From Dicyema japonicum (taxonomy: Eukaryota; Animalia; Dicyemida), in contig RDEW01000036.1 of assembly GCA_011109175.1 (NCBI GenBank), forward strand, positions 547,281-611,280: DNA of 64,000 bases. Direction: 5' to 3'. Shown here one piece after another: positions 882 through 64,000 of this stretch (position 1 is the stretch's first letter; every line of letters starts with the position of its first letter). The notes under the pieces are model-generated. The model did not search any database. It was given only the letters and a program-made list of their open reading frames with translations, and was not told the DNA's origin. The translations under genes were made by a program, and so were the position numbers.

Positions 882-1265
882 TAGGGGAACCAGAAAATTG
901 CAAATTTCAAAATAAAAATTGCAAATAATAATATTTTTAATCTTTATTTTGGAATATAATAAAAATAGAAAAAATTATAGTATTGATTAAATTTTAATTA
1001 AAATGACAGTTATGACAAAGGTAACGTCTGTGGCTCGGTAATTGCTCTGGCTCGCGATATATTTAATAACTTTGTCATAAAATTTAACAACTTTAGCAAA
1101 TAATTTAATAACTAGGCAAAGAATTGGTATCGCAGTTGTCCGCGGAAACGCTTACTCCGTGATGTCAGCAGCCGCTCTCCCCCATAGTTAATAAATAATA
1201 GTTAATAAATTTTTCATTTAATTTATGGGATTATTATTTATTTTTTGGGATTATTATTTATATTT

Positions 1266-1657
1266 TTTTAAAGCCTTTTCACGAGAGCCATAGTATTTTA
1301 TTGCTCCGCATAGGCAGGACACACACTTTATTTAAGTAAAGAACAGTTAATTTTAACTAATCGTAGAACCAAGGAATGATCTTCACTTCTTTTTTTTTTG
1401 TGTGAGAGTCCTTTCTAGACAATCCAGTTCGCAGTAAGTATCCACTGATGACGGCGTCACTCGTCAAACCAAAAGTTGAAGCACCATTACTGTAGTCCCC
1501 ATACAAGCCCACCAGGGACCTTTTGCCTGCTACGTTTCCGTCCTGAGCCACTACAGTCCTCATTATACCAACCTGATCACAAAACCTTCGTTAAGCAACC
1601 ATGTCTAGGCACACAGTACAGGGGCAGTAGGCACCACAACGACCAGCAAGCTGGCCA
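1266..1657 (-). mobile_element. Chimeric retrocopy: SRP RNA head plus 3' part of the tRNA-SINE
   Basis: Flanked by 13-bp direct repeat ATTATTTATATTT (1253-1265, 1658-1670). 1266-1470 is nearly identical to the 3' ~200 nt of the SINE at 19948-20296. Confidence 0.8.
1471..1656 (-). ncRNA. SRP (7SL) RNA, S domain / compact form
   Basis: Minus strand has helix 8 GGCUCAGG-ACG-GAAA-CGU-AGCAGG (SRP54-binding CAGG/AGCA motif, GNRA loop at 1538-1535) and helix 6 GGUUGCUUAAC-GAAG-GUUUUGUGAUC (GNAR loop at 1589-1586). A long helix 5 pairs GUUGUGGUGCC/GGUGCUUCAAC, UACUG/CAGUA and CCCC/GGGG. Ends in UUUU. Confidence 0.85.
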
Positions 1658-1704
1658 ATTATTTATATTTATTGTATTATTGTTTATTTTTTTTTATTTA
1701 TATC

Positions 1705-10000: not shown

Positions 10001-10255
10001 GATCCATTTAAACTAAGAAAGCATATCTTATAGGCATTAAAATTCGTCTCCTCCTTACTTTATTGGAAGGGGATTCATATTGGCGGATAGTTGATTTAAT
10101 TGAAATAAATGTTTATGAGTTTAAGGGAATAATATAATTTGCTAAAATCAATTCATGGAATTGAATACCTAATACCCCAACAAACAAAATCAATCCTCAA
10201 TAGGATTACTTACGTACACACAAAATATATAAAACTATTACGAAATGCCTAGGAA

Positions 10256-10668
10256 ATGTTCTCAAATTTTATTTTGTTTCTTATTCTATTAATTGTACCA
10301 AAAAAAAACTATAGCTCTAATTACTAAAGCACCAACAACAACGTCTAACACAACCCAACCTCCAACAACAACATATAACAACCCAAACTTACGAGGAATC
10401 TTTCAACTATAACAACCCAACCACCAACAACAACATCTAACACAACCCAACCTCCAACAACAACTCCTATGTCTACAACTACTCAACTCCCAACAACAAC
10501 TCCTATGGCTACAACAACCCAACCCACAACACTTCCTCTATGTAGAACAACTACTACAACTACTCCAACAAGATCAGGAATCGGAGCAAATACAATTTCA
10601 GGAAAACTATGTAATCTTTCACATCACTTTTAGTTGTTCTTTCAGTAATAATCATGGTAGTTCGGTAA
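10256..10668 (+). CDS. Thr-rich mucin-like surface protein, copy 2 (frameshifted as assembled)
   Basis: Same signal peptide, repeats, 23-nt intron (10611-10633) and tail KLFVLSVIIMVVR*. An A9 run after the signal peptide and a second indel break the frame. Confidence 0.6.
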
Positions 10669-11929
10669 AAAACCTACGATTCTAACATATTAACATTTAA
10701 TTTGATTAATTTTGATTGTTCGGTTAATTGGGGTACTCGGAGAAATAGTTGAAATGGAGATCGAACGTGACAAATTTTCCCTCTTGATTACTGATTCTGA
10801 TATATGACAAGTGGTGTGTGATAACATAAATTTTAGGGAAATTCACTTAATTTGTTTTGTACTTTTCTTTTTCATGTAAAATTCCATTTACTCCACATTT
10901 GTTCTTTTTAAAATAAAATCACATTTTGACAAAGTCTACTAATTTCGGAAAGAATGGACTTTGTTGTAATTTGGGGGAGATTATTTTAACAACTATAATA
11001 AACTTTATTAACATGGAAGGTTAAGAGGGTATCAAGTTGACGATTCTTTCTACAAGTCCTCCATAGCTTGGACTTTCATCTGTGACCTCAGACCACTCTT
11101 GCGACATACACGTAAGGATAGATCTCCTTTCAGAAAGTTTGCCATCCTTTTCTCTGCTATTTCTCTAATCGACACTACTCTTTGTCCTCATCTAACGTCT
11201 CAGTTTGTGTAAGGCAATCTTGATCCCTCTCCCTTAGATTTTTAAAGAAGCAAAATAAAACACTCTATGTATGTAGTGTAATACCATCCTCAGAGGAGCC
11301 ATGGAATGATCGTACTTGAAAAATAAATAAAAATATATTCCTTCGAGTTTGAATTTCTTCATACCGATTTCGCGTGGTGTGTTGATTTTTCTACGGAGGA
11401 AACATTTTTATACTTGGAACAAATTTACTTCAAAGCAGATCCTTATAAAGTGAATATATTCCCAAAAACTTAAAATGTGATTTTAAAAAATATTTAAATA
11501 ACAGTTTTCCCGCCATCTGTCTATGCAAATCTTTAAAGTTGTTCTGCCTTGGATGAAAGATTTACTAATATCAAAAATTTTCACAAAATATCGAATTTTT
11601 TAAAATGAAAACATTAATGTCTATTTGATTCCATTCTATCAGTAATTAACGGTGGAACATTTCCATCCCTGTCAACCAGTTCTGGTCTCGGCTTCTCGTT
11701 CGCCTGTTTCTGACCGACGCAAACCGAAGGATCAGATCTCAATTATTCAGCTGAACGGGATTAAAGGGAAAATTAATGAACTTAGCATTTATTTAGAAAT
11801 TAAATAGTTATATACTAATCATTCAAAAATCGAAGTTATCGGCTTCATGAATTTAACAGACAGCAGTTTGACTGATTTATAGCTGGAGACTTTTTCCTCC
11901 GTTGACAAAACGGTTCCCTATATAAGGGG

Positions 11930-14647: not shown

Positions 14648-15022
14648 GATTATGGTAATTAGCGGATGGATTAGGGTAATTAGAAAAGGAGTTAGTTTGA
14701 ATTAGAGAATGAATTAGTTTAATTAGAGAAGGACTTAGTTCAAATTAGAGAATGGATTAGGATGAATTGGATCCATTTAACTAAAGAAGCCTAGCATAGC
14801 GCAGTAATAAATTCCTTCCTCCTTACTTTATTGGAAGGGGATTCATATTGGCGGATAGTTGACCTAATTGAAATAAATGTTTATGAGTTTAAGGGAATAA
14901 TATAATTTGCTAAAATCAATTCATGGAAATGAATACCTAATACCCCAACAAACAAAATCAATCCTCAATAGGATTACTTACGTACACACAAAATATATAA
15001 ACTATTACGAAATGCCTAGGAA

Positions 15023-15457
15023 ATGTTCTCAAATTTTATTTTATTTCTTATTCTATTAATTGTACCAAAAAAACTATAGCTATAACTACTCAACCAACAA
15101 CAACGTCTAACACAACCCAACCACCAACAACAACATTTAACACAACCCAACCACCAACAACAACATTTAACACAACCCAACCACCAACAACAACATCTAA
15201 CACAACCCAACCACCAACAACAACATCTAACACAACCCAACCTTTAACAACAACTCCTATGGCTACAACTACTCAACCCCCAACAACAACTCCTATGGCT
15301 ACAACAACCCAACCTACAACACTTCCTCTATGTAGACAACTACTACAACTACTCCAACAAGATCAGGAATCGGAGCAAATACAATTTCAGGAAAACTAAG
15401 TAATCTTTCATATCACTTTTAGTTGTTCTTTCAGTAATAATCATGGTAGTTCGGTAA
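15023..15457 (+). CDS. Thr-rich mucin-like surface protein, copy 3 (five 30-bp PPTTT(S/F)NTTQ repeats; frameshifted as assembled)
   Basis: Same leader, 23-nt intron (15400-15422) and tail; an A7 run and a 1-nt loss at tgtag(g)ac break the frame. Confidence 0.6.
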
Positions 15458-15981
15458 TAACCTACGATTCTAACATATTAACATTTAATTTGATTAATTT
15501 TGATTGTTCGGTTAATTGGGGTACTTGGAATATTCTTGGAATATTCTTCAGTTAAAGAACATGTTATTTGACAGTTCTTCCCGTACCCACTACAAGCAAA
15601 CTATTTTGTAGTTGTTTGATGAATGAGAGAAATTTGGTCTATTGATTACAAATGCAGTTTTCTCTCCCAGCTGACCCATATGCTGATCTTACTAGAAACT
15701 TTTACTTTTTGTTATTACTTTTTTGTTGGCTATCAGTTTATTTGTTTAATAAATCAATTCCGAGTTAACTCAAACAAAATAAGCCCAAATAAATATAATG
15801 TGAAAGAAATACTCAATTATGAAGCATTATAAATTTTATAGCACCAACTCCCAATTATTTATTTTATTTTTAATAACCCCTGATTTCTGGAGAATGGTTG
15901 AGTTATATCAAGTTCCCAAAGTGAAGTGAGGGACGCATTCTTTCAAAGTATCTTCCATATCAGGCATTTTGAGAACTAATT

Positions 15982-19227: not shown

Positions 19228-19947
19228 TCTTGCTTTAGAAAATTGATTAATTCAGCTTTATAAGCTTAACTAACTTATAAATATATTATTTTAATTGGTT
19301 AACCATCAAAAACAATAAATAATAAATATTTTAATAAATTAATTATCACACTCTACTTACTTGCGGTCACCAATATATGCAGTTACTAAGAAATCAGATT
19401 ATCACACCCACAGTTTGTCCATCCAATATTGTCCAAGCAAGTTCATCCCATTCAACGCTCATTTCTCGTTCCTAGTTGAGCCAGTTGTCCATAATCCAAG
19501 AGTCATCAGTCATAATTACTTCATAAAGGCGGCCAACATGCCGAACATCCGCCTTTATGATAACCTTATCAAATACCTCAAATACGACCATAGTTACGAG
19601 AAAACTCCAAACCTGTTATGGAGACTGGCTCAAGATACCCGTTAGTTTCGACCTTCCCTTATCGGTCTGGATTGCTTAGTTAACTGAAGACACTCTTTTA
19701 ACTCTGATAATCTTGAGTCAACAATAATTATCACAATCCATTTACATGCGGTTTCTCAGGAAACCCTAATTGATTAAACGGTAAAGTGCGCTCGCTACAT
19801 GGGCGTGTGTAGGGTCAAGGAGGAACACTAGAATAAATTGAGGACTCTTTTGGGACGATTCAGAGTCACATGGTTCTCTAGATCTAGTCTTCAGTTGTGG
19901 TCTTTTGACGTTATTTTATCATTCAATAAATCTTATTTTACATGTTA

Positions 19948-20296
19948 ATAATAATAATAATAATAAAGCCTTTTCACGAGAGCCATAGTATTTTATAGCT
20001 CCGCATAGGCAGGACACACACTTTATTTAAGTAAAGAACAGTTAATTTTAACTAATCGTAGAACCAAGGAATGATCTCACTTCTTTTTTTTTCTTTTTCT
20101 TGTGTGAGTGTCCTTTCTAGACAAATCCAGTTCCGCAGTGAGTATTCACTGATGACGGCGTCACTCGTCAAACCATTTCTGCATCGTAGATGCGTGGAAC
20201 CTTCCACCAGGTGAACAGCAGCGAGATTTGAACCCGTAGCCTAAGCCACTTAAGCCGACACCTAACCACTAAGCCACCCCAGAGAATGTTCCTCAG
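19948..20296 (-). mobile_element. Full-length tRNA-derived SINE (349 bp)
   Basis: A box TGGCTTAGTGG (20276-20266), B box GGTTCAAATC (20234-20225), (ATT)n tail, 13-bp TSD ATTTTACATGTTA (19935-19947, 20297-20309). Confidence 0.9.
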
Positions 20297-20477
20297 ATTT
20301 TACATGTTACTGTCTCTAATTCTGTCCTCCACCTAATCCTGTCATCAGAACGAGGTTTTTTGAAACAAATACACTATTTTGTTTCTATAAGGGCTGTCAT
20401 AAAATATACGACCCCCTTCTCCAATGGACCAATCAGAATTTTCCCTACCAGAGGACATCTGTGTAAACCGTCTAGGC

Positions 20478-22100: not shown

Positions 22101-23012
22101 TTAAAGCATGAACGGGAGATCTAAATTTTTCTGTCCAATCCCCAGTAAAGACACCCGAACTGAGAGGTCCCTGGAATGTTGTAGAACACGTAGCCGGGCC
22201 AGAGAATGTTCCTCAGAGTTACCAATGCATTTCCTCGTTCAAACTGCAAAGTCCATGAACCTGAAGTGATGACTTGGATTACCCTGAGGTACCGAATTTT
22301 CAATACTGTTGAAGATGTCGATAGACTTTTCGTAGTCTCCCCTTCTAGCCACGGCCTCCACGTCGAAATCGACGGGATCCATGAAATAGAAGTAACTGCT
22401 GAATTTAGTAGCCTCGGAGACCGTAAGTCCTTCATATTACAGCAAGCGAACCCTCAAATAGTCTATTTTTAATGATAGTCTTGTCCGGAGCCGACAAATA
22501 CGCCCCACGTGGGACGATTGAGATTTCATCAATCAATTTTATTAAGGCTCGCAAACGGTCTTCTTCCTTTATCAGAATCTGCAGTATTTTTTAATTTGAA
22601 ATACCAACCACTTTCTCGTTGTCTCCATCCTCTCCCACGACTTTGTCAATCAGTTCGTACTCATAGCTGGGATCTCCCGAGAAACGCTCAAAGATTAGGG
22701 AGTAACTCCGCAAGGCTACCTCGTCCACTTCCGGTAATAAATTCCACGTTACACACTTTGAACTACGCTTATTTGCCACTCCCACCTGTAAAAGGTCTTT
22801 CTGTTTCTCATCAAATCATCAGTAAATCCCTGAGCAATGTAATAGTCACCGTTGATTCCCTCAATTCTCTCCCAAAATGTGACTTTGTTAAACTTGTTGT
22901 TAGCCTTCAAGATTGGCAGAGAAGTCTGCAAGGCTGCCCTTATTTGCGGAGAAAGGGAAATGCCGCTTGTTCCGAAATACTCAATGTCTACCAATACGGT
23001 CTGTGAATCCAT
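22101..23012 (-). CDS. RSPH9: Radial spoke head protein 9 homolog
   Basis: FWERIEGINGDYYIAQG...RFSGDPSYEYE...IKEEDRL...VPRGAY...GSWTLQFERGNALVTLRNILWPG...KNLDLPFML*. Introns 22763-22785, 22579-22608, 22430-22451, 22261-22282; one G-run indel near the end. Confidence 0.95.
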
Positions 23013-35193: not shown

Positions 35194-35662
35194 ATTTTGA
35201 TTTTTTTTCATTTTTCAACTTTATTCTTTAATTGTGTTTCTTCTGACAATAGCCATTGAGATACTATCTCGAAGCCACCCAGTCTCACTCAGTTCCTTGG
35301 TAGCACTTTGGATCATTAAGTCGATCCGACGGACTTTAATTTCTCTAAACTGTGGATGCTGGTGATACATGCAAGTCATCTTTATATAATTCTTACATTC
35401 TATCCATGTACTTTCTAATAGCACCAATGCTTGCTCACACAGCTTGCTACCCCCTGTAGTGGGGTTCTCCCTTGTCGATTATCAATTTGTCTTTTTTGGT
35501 CAACATAAATCAGTCTCTTCCTTATCAAGAGGTTTTTAAGTATCAACGGATTCTATAAATCAGTCTTTAGTCATCTATCCCGTATTTATAATTCCAAAAT
35601 CATTAATTTTTCCAATAAGTAGTTAATTTACAAAAAATAGTAAATAATGAAATATACTAGTG

Positions 35663-35980
35663 GGGCCTCAAAATAAAGTGGTTGATTTATTGACTTATGT
35701 GGAACGAGTGTCGGGAAACAGGCCTGATGGTCCCTAGATCGAATCTCGCTGAGGCACATTTCGACTGAAGGTTCCACGCATCTACGATGCTTTGGCTTGA
35801 AGAGTGCTATGAACATTTTTATGCGGAATCAGATTGTCTATAAAGGCATACCAACAAAAAGAAGCATTCTTGGTTCTCCCTCTACGATTAGTTATAATAA
35901 CTGTTCTTTACTTAAAGTGTGTGTTCTGCCTGAGGGGAGTTATAGGTAATATGGCTCTGCGTAAAAGTGCAGAATTATTA
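35663..35980 (+). mobile_element. Diverged copy of the tRNA-derived SINE
   Basis: Shares gaaggttccacgcatctacgatgc, ctacgattagtt..aactgttctttacttaaa and the 3' tail with the 20-kb copy; degenerate A and B boxes. Confidence 0.75.
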
Positions 35981-36372
35981 AATGGAAATACTGGTGGAAT
36001 AATATCTATAAAATTGATTTTATCTTTCACATAAACCCTAATCTTATCTTTTATCATCAGTGAGACAGTCTCTAGTGGGGCCATAGACATATTAAAGGAG
36101 GGAATTGGTGTAGTATCTTTAGCTTCATACGGAGGACCCATAACAATAATATTCCTCCTGGTTTTCCTGTCTTCTACAGCACTTCTTCCGGTTTCATGCT
36201 TCAGGTGCACATATAAACGGATCGCAGGCTGAATCAGTATCATGCGTGAATCAGCAAGTTTGTACACGTCTATAAGTCTGGATCTCCAAAGATCTCTGAT
36301 ACACAATGAGACTGGTGATATAAAGTCATAACGTGATCGACATCGCCTTGCATGCCTTGCTTCTGTATAGAT

Positions 36373-62730: not shown

Positions 62731-62850
62731 AAAACAAAAAATTTATTTAAAATAATAAAAACAATTATTTTTAAGTCTTGACATTAAAACCGATCTTAAG
62801 TCTTAACATAAAAAAAAACCGATCTTCTTCCATAATAAATGAAATAAAAA

Positions 62851-63385
62851 TCAGAAAATTCCTTCTTGATGTTTGACTACATTATCATCTACGAAGTCCA
62901 GGGGACTTCGAAGACTAGCACTATTGAATCCGAAGCCTAGATGACCGTGACATATTATGTGCCCCGGGCCAAAATACTTAGTATTGACCTCAGCTTCGAA
63001 GCCTGAAACGTCGTCCTCATTCCTGAATCCTAGCAACAAGTGGGATTCTCCGCGTTTGATAACTCTTCCTTTGGCATAGGCAGCCAGAGTACCTATGCCG
63101 CACAGGAGCTTAACGACTCCCACGTTCGGCACCTATAACCAACTAGTGTAGTTAGTCCCACTTTAACCAGATTTCAATTTTTCTGTCTTTCCTTTCAAAA
63201 AAAGGCTAAATTAAATCAGAATTAAACTTACCGTTTTAAGCGAAAAATGTGATACCTTTTCTCGTACTCTCCTCTCATTTGAGTACTTATATCTTCAATC
63301 GATTCCACAAAGATATGATTAATTTTTTCATATGACAAGATCTCTGATATATCCCTAAATTGAGACAAAAAATCACTAAATCCAT
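62851..63385 (-). CDS. Probable small multi-exon host gene, unidentified
   Basis: Open frames with 22-29-nt GT-AG introns (e.g. gtaagtttaattctgatttaatttag); candidate ATG at 63385. Confidence 0.4.
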
Positions 63386-63516
63386 GATGTTAAAATTAAA
63401 AGAAATCAGGATAGCCATTTAATAAATACAGTTTGTATTAATTTTTTTTTAGAATTAATGAATTAGTTAATTGTTCATAATAGTTACAAAAAATCATATT
63501 ATGTAGTATATCTCTG

Positions 63517-63530
63517 GTTACCATGGAAAC
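63517..63530. promoter_or_regulatory. Canonical RFX X-box
   Basis: GTTACCATGGAAAC, with a partial second site GTTGCCCATGTGAC at 63546-63559. Confidence 0.6.
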
Positions 63531-64000
63531 AGGTAAAAAACAGGTTGCCCATGTGACATATTATCTAACATTATACACTTGCTGTTTCCGACATGATCAT
63601 CCATGTTCACTCAATTTCGGAATAGAAGAGATTCGAGTATAGGACCTACGTCCGACCGATATCTCCGTTCGAAACATCTGTTTTTTATGTCTGTCATCTC
63701 GTCCATATACTAGAGAGAATAAAAAATGCTCTTTCCATAGTGAAAATAAGTAGTCACTCAGTGCGATAAAAATGCTTCTGACTACTTGAATGCCGATTCT
63801 GCCTAACAAAAGAATTTGAAAAAGTACTCAATCTTCGGAGATAGTTTTCGTTTCGTCCCAATCGCCTTCAAAAATAAGGAGTGGTTTAAAAAAAGGAATC
63901 ACTAATGAAACTGGCAATCTCGACTCAGAAAATTGCGTAAACGAGACGGTTTTCTCACCTCCTTGGAATGTTATCCCTATGAGGATTCTGTTGTCTTTGT

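Follow-up and report, generated by a model that had tools for sequence, protein, structure and literature searches.

A single-copy SRP RNA-SINE chimera in the dicyemid Dicyema japonicum, a probable template-switch retrogene

The genome of Dicyema japonicum contains a single copy of a fusion between a complete retrocopy of SRP RNA and the 3' part of an abundant SINE. The fusion resides in a 64-kb stretch of DNA (G000:C290:547281-611280) that we analysed and that is termed the window in the following; positions without a contig name refer to it. With considerable confidence we interpret the unit as a bipartite chimeric retrogene that originated in a single event, through a template switch and with a likely target-site duplication (TSD) of 13 bp. 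What carries this reading can be taken directly from the data, namely the anatomy of the unit, its uniqueness, its source gene, a hot spot for 5' ends in the SINE and the similar degree to which both halves have diverged. LINE-mediated chimeric retrogenes are a known class, to which the unit adds a further case.

Anatomy of the unit and the source of its SRP RNA

As had been announced in an earlier note on this DNA, the chimera is present at 1266-1657, and it is oriented on the minus strand. Read in this direction, a 13-mer is followed by 187 nt of SRP-like sequence, about 201 nt from the 3' part of the SINE, the sequence AAAA and a second copy of the 13-mer (Table 1). The halves are fused without spacer and in the same orientation, and neither a tail nor target sequence is present at the join. 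Here, the chimera reads CAACTTTT immediately followed by GGTTTGACG, while the SRP RNA gene on contig C337 reads CAACTTTTT before its own flank begins and the SINE reads AAATGGTTTGACG. The T at 1471 can also be assigned to SINE position 126, which corresponds to 1 nt of microhomology and sets the maximum ambiguity of the junction at 1 nt.

Table 1. Positions of the chimeric unit, its parts, its surroundings and the reference SINE in the window
Feature	Position	Strand	Basis or remark
Chimeric unit	1266-1657	-	between two ATTATTTATATTT 13-mers
SRP RNA retrocopy, complete, ~187 nt	1471-1657	-	pairwise alignment with C337 gene
S-domain core	1488-1629	-	Rfam Metazoa_SRP model positions 104-247
Junction, U-tract (TTTT) of SRP RNA 3' end	1471-1474	-	comparison of gene, chimera and SINE
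SINE 3' module, element positions 127-336, without head and two hairpins	1270-1470	-	alignment with 20-kb SINE
A4 tail (plus strand TTTT) after SINE end GGCTTT	1266-1269	-	sequence reading
Direct repeat copy 1, ATTATTTATATTT, 3' side of the minus-strand element	1253-1265	.	putative TSD
Direct repeat copy 2, ATTATTTATATTT, adjoining the SRP 5' end	1658-1670	.	putative TSD
Two 21-bp units GGGATTATTATTTAT[A]TTTTT, subterminal array of transposon, target site	1227-1269	+	paralogous arrays
Reference full-length SINE	19935-20309	-	body 19965-20279; (ATT)n tail 19948-19964; 17 extra 5' bases 20280-20296

A genome search revealed three SRP-like loci in the whole genome, only one of which is an intact gene. 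This likely gene (G000:C337:42015-42201) features a TATAAAAG box 20-30 nt upstream, extends from TGGCCAGC to CAAC and is followed by a T5 terminator. In an end-to-end alignment with window positions 1657-1471, 183 of 187 nucleotides are identical (98%), the four substitutions being located at 1621, 1599, 1551 and 1495. Homology sets in with the first base of the RNA (TGGCCAGC), includes four T residues of the terminator and is lost completely beyond both ends, so that the retrocopy possesses neither upstream promoter homology (it lacks the gene's TATA region) nor the downstream flank of the gene. As the copy is bounded by the ends of the transcript, it derives from RNA and not from a duplication of DNA. 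The ends of the retrocopy are in turn indirect evidence for where the short SRP RNA that was copied begins and ends.

A default Rfam scan missed the SRP part because its score lies under the gathering threshold, which is 70 for Metazoa_SRP (RF00017). In a permissive scan of 1100-1800, this model matches at 1629-1488 on the minus strand with 58.4 bits (E 3.8e-14). The C337 gene itself also stays below the threshold (62.6 bits) and is aligned with model positions 104-247 only. These positions represent helix 5 and the S domain, the motifs of which are conserved in the gene. In the predicted fold of the RNA, the 5' 28 nt form one small hairpin and a long helix is closed by both ends; a canonical Alu domain is found neither in this fold nor in the Rfam alignment, which comprises S-domain and helix-5 positions only. 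As judged from its sequence, the source RNA is an atypical and reduced SRP RNA, and the Alu domain seems to be absent from the SRP RNA of this species. The SRP part of the chimera is therefore no S-domain fragment, and the earlier note's 'S domain rather than Alu domain' is not supported as a selective capture: what was copied is the whole SRP RNA, which is naturally short here. Among the SRP proteins of the same genome, SRP19 was found with 52 bits, SRP14 is represented by a sub-threshold exon match (17.8 bits, E 0.19), and the genome search for SRP9 returned nothing. A comparable reduction of SRP has been described for microsporidia (PMC5499648). With regard to other small RNAs, 13 copies of U6 snRNA score above the Rfam cut-off genome-wide, three of them on contig C351.

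The SINE partner and its 5'-end hot spot

The partner of the SRP RNA is a dispersed high-copy element with TSDs and simple-repeat or A tails, for which the genome search gave 2049 candidates at first look. Its reference copy, located at 20 kb in the window, is flanked on both ends by ATTTTACATGTTA (19935-19947 and 20297-20309), and the 13-bp TSD that the earlier note ascribed to this intact SINE is thus present. In the alignment with the full SINE at 19948-20279, window positions 1471-1269 of the chimera correspond to positions 126-337 with 93% identity. Repeat search combined with pairwise alignment likewise relates 1238-1397 and 1430-1471 to the element at 19933-20175. The earlier note had the SRP RNA replace the tRNA head of the SINE. 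The direct fusion to ~201 nt of SINE sequence is borne out, but the missing part amounts to ~104 nt and comprises two hairpins in addition to the head. An A-box-like TGGCTTAGTGG and a B-box-like GGTTCAAATCT can be read directly in the head, and it is from these motifs that the label 'tRNA head' stems. ARAGORN detects no tRNA in the whole window and Rfam none in the 20-kb SINE at E<=1.

Start positions, TSDs and tails of the family were taken from an alignment of 30 copies with the SINE at 20 kb. Fourteen of them start at 22-26 and count as full length (among them L005, whose alignment extends into its own TSD), nine start at 120-127 and seven are scattered. The nine that start at 120-127 are each preceded by unrelated DNA and equipped with their own TSD. 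The SINE part of the chimera begins at 126/127 and thus within this hot spot. In the predicted fold of the SINE RNA, two hairpins, GUGGAAGGUUCCAC and GCAUCUACGAUGC (positions 94-107 and 108-120), directly precede this point on its 5' side, and a single-stranded stretch comes after them. The hot spot would fit a pause site for reverse transcriptase or the start of a short RNA that arises by processing. Cleavage by an HDV-like ribozyme was considered as a cause of the hot spot and rejected for this SINE, as Rfam yields no ribozyme hit at E<=10 or E<=1 and a P1 helix of 6-7 bp cannot be drawn from positions 116-131. TSDs are clear in about two thirds of the 30 copies and range from 7 to 16 bp, with several of 12-13 bp. 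Tails mostly consist of (ATT)n and in about a fifth of the copies of A7-A10; both types occur in full-length as well as headless copies, which may reflect two mobilising LINEs or variable tailing.

Some further features of the family deserve mention. Between the head of the 20-kb SINE and its TSD, 17-19 extra bases (20280-20298) copy the sequence at 22200-22218 in 18 of 19 positions. This source is situated 1.9 kb away on the same strand, and the extra bases may be the product of another short template switch. At 35660-35985 on the plus strand, the window contains a diverged relative of the SINE that is ~79% identical in the body and has a different head. The relative retains an identical block of 24 nt, GAAGGTTCCACGCATCTACGATGC, that spans the two hairpins and appears to be under strong conservation.

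Target site, read evidence and origin of the unit

The unit is inserted in a Tc1/mariner-like DNA transposon, with a weak DDE_3 match in the ORF at 1476-2108. This host transposon extends over ~1050-2100 and features two types of subterminal tandem arrays with units of ~21 bp, a TTTGTCAAAATGTTTAATAAC type and a GGGATYATTATTTATATTTTT type; the copy in the window lacks ~350 bp that its paralogues carry. Elsewhere in the window, a mucin-like repeat of gene size is present in three copies (76-881, 10008-10825 and 14776-15529) with variable Thr/Pro-rich coding repeats of 30 nt.

The 13-bp direct repeats reported by the earlier note exist: within the 64-kb window, ATTATTTATATTT is found at 1253-1265 and 1658-1670 and nowhere else, against 0.02 occurrences expected from shuffled sequences. 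Yet, the 13-mer is an element of the 21-bp tandem unit GGGATYATTATTTATATTTTT that recurs at many loci, so that shuffling the whole window provides the wrong null and the statistic in favor of a TSD is weakened. Paralogous arrays in fact read ...ATTATTTATATTT TT GGGATC ATTATTTATATTT ATTG..., and removal of the 8-bp spacer yields precisely the observed flanks. It is thus conceivable that a single chimeric insertion went along with the deletion of ~6-8 bp of target and that the 13-mers are pre-existing units of the array instead of a TSD. We regard this as unlikely, because exactly the spacer would have to be lost, and because 13 bp falls in the middle of the range of TSDs in the family. The repeats abut both ends of the unit exactly and an A4 tail is present. 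A simple 13-bp TSD is more likely than deletion of the spacer since the SINE family normally generates TSDs of such length, and the flanking repeat would then be a true TSD. Under either model, the insert is one contiguous block inside the array. Contigs that join 1267 to 1658 were considered as an empty-site allele and dismissed, since their GAGATC or 27-nt filler matches paralogous arrays (C24, C157, C367 and others); an empty-site allele was not seen among the contigs that cover the stretch.

The junction between SRP RNA and SINE occurs once in the 67.5-Mb assembly (67,542,437 bases in 377 pieces). The published genome of D. japonicum is described with 67.5 Mb, 377 scaffolds, 49% repeats and 1.24% heterozygosity and was obtained from pooled worms from one octopus (PMC6736024). 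Read evidence was drawn from Logan contigs of sequencing runs. Parts of the stretch are found in eight runs; the best four are from one sample, and none of the eight is on record as RNA. The junction, for which a check in reads had been proposed, is crossed by contigs of two runs that stem from one sample, probably the one assembled: in run X2 by a contig of 83 nt (1443-1525, 1 mismatch) and in run X1 by a contig of 67 nt (1454-1520, 0 mismatches) with only 21 nt on the SINE side. Run X5, the sole run from another sample, does not cover the SRP part. All contigs are short, and none of them spans the whole unit. A further X1 contig (1552-1657) agrees with the gene at 1599 and with the chimera at 1621, and from 1658 on it departs from the window with a different upstream flank; the base specific for the chimera at 1599 is absent from the contigs listed. 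This contig presumably represents a third SRP haplotype, an allele of the SRP gene among the pooled worms, and part of the four substitutions in the copy may accordingly go back to variation within its source gene.

How did the two parts come together? SRP half and gene differ by 2.1% and the SINE half differs from the family consensus by 2.5%, with many family members being only 0-1% away; both halves look equally old. A tail or a TSD belonging to just one of the halves is not found at the locus. The earlier note's argument for a single event agrees with both observations, and its notion of one fused unit, made by a switch from SINE RNA to the 3' end of SRP RNA, is matched by a junction in the U-tract and a copy that runs to the first base. 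An origin in two events, with an SRP retropseudogene and a truncated SINE becoming neighbors by chance or targeting, might be invoked as both SRP pseudogenes in the genome (for the second, see below) adjoin retroelements. Certain retroelements do target pol III genes. We nevertheless deem such a history very improbable: the SRP part has no tail, neither half alone is flanked by a direct repeat, the join connects the 3' end of the RNA with the hot-spot 5' end of the SINE in a base-exact manner and the halves are equally diverged. In addition, the locus is devoid of promoter homology and thus not an SRP gene. An artefact of assembly or scaffolding, by which a read of the SRP gene was misjoined to a SINE, is hardly credible. 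Reads from a SINE with so many copies are easily misjoined, and the contigs on the stretch are short, with none spanning the whole unit, but two runs independently yielded contigs that extend across the junction, 4 positions distinguish the SRP part from the gene and the flanks are continuous sequence of the host transposon.

The view that the unit is the founder or a member of a new SRP-headed SINE family, transcribed and mobile, can draw on its architecture, which is that proposed for the origin of hagfish SINE1 from 7SL RNA and a tRNA-SINE (PMC7245038), and on the young age of the SINE family with its many copies at 0-1% from the consensus. We give this view an extremely small chance, because the junction occurs once in the genome among three SRP-like loci overall, the gene's upstream TATA region is missing, the copy has decayed by ~2% and the stretch appears in no RNA run. 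The earlier idea of a SINE built on the SRP S domain and repeated genome-wide is not compatible with a junction that is unique in this assembly. Lack of the SRP promoter, single copy and ~2% drift rather identify the unit as a dead-on-arrival pseudogene and not a SINE.

We therefore return to the single-event template switch. In the course of events that we propose, the reverse transcriptase of a LINE would prime at a nick in the 21-bp array of the DNA transposon and copy SINE RNA from its 3' end. It would leave this template at about position 126, where either a recurrent short SINE RNA has its 5' end or the enzyme pauses just 3' of the two stable hairpins, jump onto the U-tract at the 3' end of SRP RNA and copy the latter up to its first nucleotide. 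Integration of the cDNA would follow, most likely accompanied by a 13-bp TSD. It is the template jump itself, the identity of the enzyme and the nature of the flanking repeat as a true TSD that we infer. The enzyme may be an RTE, as supposed in the earlier note. LINEs with AP endonuclease and reverse transcriptase are abundant in the genome (6563 RVT_1 candidates). Among 30 reverse transcriptase loci and two 10-kb LINE regions, BLAST uncovered no LINE that shares the tail of the SINE and returned inserted SINE copies only.

A second SRP pseudogene and relation to known chimeric elements

An older SRP pseudogene is located at G000:C373:62824-62990. It exhibits ~88% identity over the part that aligns, and a 16-nt deletion takes out the GGAA motif of helix 8. 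Homology extends from within ~2 nt of the 5' end of the RNA to CAACTTT in the U-tract, and a dispersed repeat begins 0-5 nt further on (pseudogene and downstream repeat, 62824-63623). Copies of this repeat on C310 and C190 start no more than 3 nt from the same point and are preceded by unrelated DNA. A better preserved relative on C343 is a LINE with coding sequence for a CCHC-knuckle ORF1, an AP endonuclease and a reverse transcriptase. The C373 locus is probably an independent second chimera, in which SRP RNA directly precedes a LINE whose 5' end is complete. It follows the same logic as the full-length U6/L1 chimeras. The LINE on C373 is fragmentary. Taken together, this suggests that reverse transcriptase has repeatedly jumped onto SRP RNA.

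Chimeric retrogenes made by LINEs are characterized by a full-length cellular RNA in the 5' part, a 5'-truncated retroelement in the 3' part, direct repeats of 12-16 bp and a switch beside hairpins (Gogvadze et al., PMC2104539). 7SL RNA is among the partners reported, and WEIRD-MgSINE is a chimera of a small RNA and a SINE (PMC2104539). Further examples of the class are U6/L1 in mammals and WEIRD-MGL ('MINE'), like WEIRD-MgSINE from Magnaporthe (PMC2104539, PMC4476161, PMC11838501), and 7SL/L1 chimeras have also been reported from mammals (PMC11838501). The Dicyema unit resembles this class in that a full-length small RNA constitutes the 5' part and is joined at its 3' end, and that the switch point lies next to predicted hairpins. 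Its flanking repeats of 13 bp have a length within the 12-16 bp of the class, but their 13-mer is part of the 21-bp tandem array. As in WEIRD-MgSINE, the 3' part is a 5'-truncated SINE in the same orientation. Unlike the chimeras from mammals and Magnaporthe, it resides in a dicyemid, a spiralian parasite, and would be the work of an enzyme that is neither L1 nor MGL. Further differences from known chimeric retrogenes are the A4 tail in a family with mostly (ATT)n tails, the break at a sharp 5'-end hot spot that is shared by ~30% of the normal copies and the naturally short SRP RNA that served as acceptor.

A full-length, promoter-less retrocopy of SRP RNA is also what processed 7SL pseudogenes (P7SL type) consist of. 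Other than in these, the SRP sequence is not directly followed by a tail, but the SINE fragment continues and supplies it. With the SINE1 families (Alu, B1 and hagfish SINE1-1_EBu), the Dicyema chimera shares a 5' part derived from SRP/7SL RNA and a 3' part derived from a retroelement, and hagfish SINE1 has been proposed to descend from a fusion of 7SL RNA with a tRNA-SINE, mobilised by an RTE (Kojima, PMC7245038). The Dicyema chimera, however, retains the S domain, which has been lost from SINE1 families. Furthermore, it does not have the fold of the Alu domain, there are no copies that share its junction and none of the runs in which it appears is on record as RNA. A single copy compares with 2,363 full-length copies of SINE1-1_EBu in hagfish (PMC7245038) and with more than 1 million copies of Alu in human DNA (PMC11260458). 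With one junction and three SRP-like loci, the copy number is not that of a SINE family.

One may speculate that SRP RNA is a preferred acceptor of LINE reverse transcriptase in dicyemids and that the unit at 1266-1657 is an intermediate on the way to an SRP-headed SINE, perhaps transcribed from an internal SRP promoter and mobile in some populations. We consider this a long shot. A possible reason for such a preference is that LINE and SINE ribonucleoproteins form at ribosomes, the site of SRP.

The mechanism as such is known and the lineage is new; a new class of elements is not revealed. The reduced SRP RNA is in fact a more unusual object than its chimeric copy. What the chimera offers is a clean and datable case of template jumping by reverse transcriptase in a dicyemid, that is in a lineage in which the biology of retroelements is almost unstudied. 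Its base-exact connection of an RNA 3' end with a recurrent SINE 5' end corresponds to the postulated intermediate from which composite SINEs, hagfish SINE1 among them, would arise.
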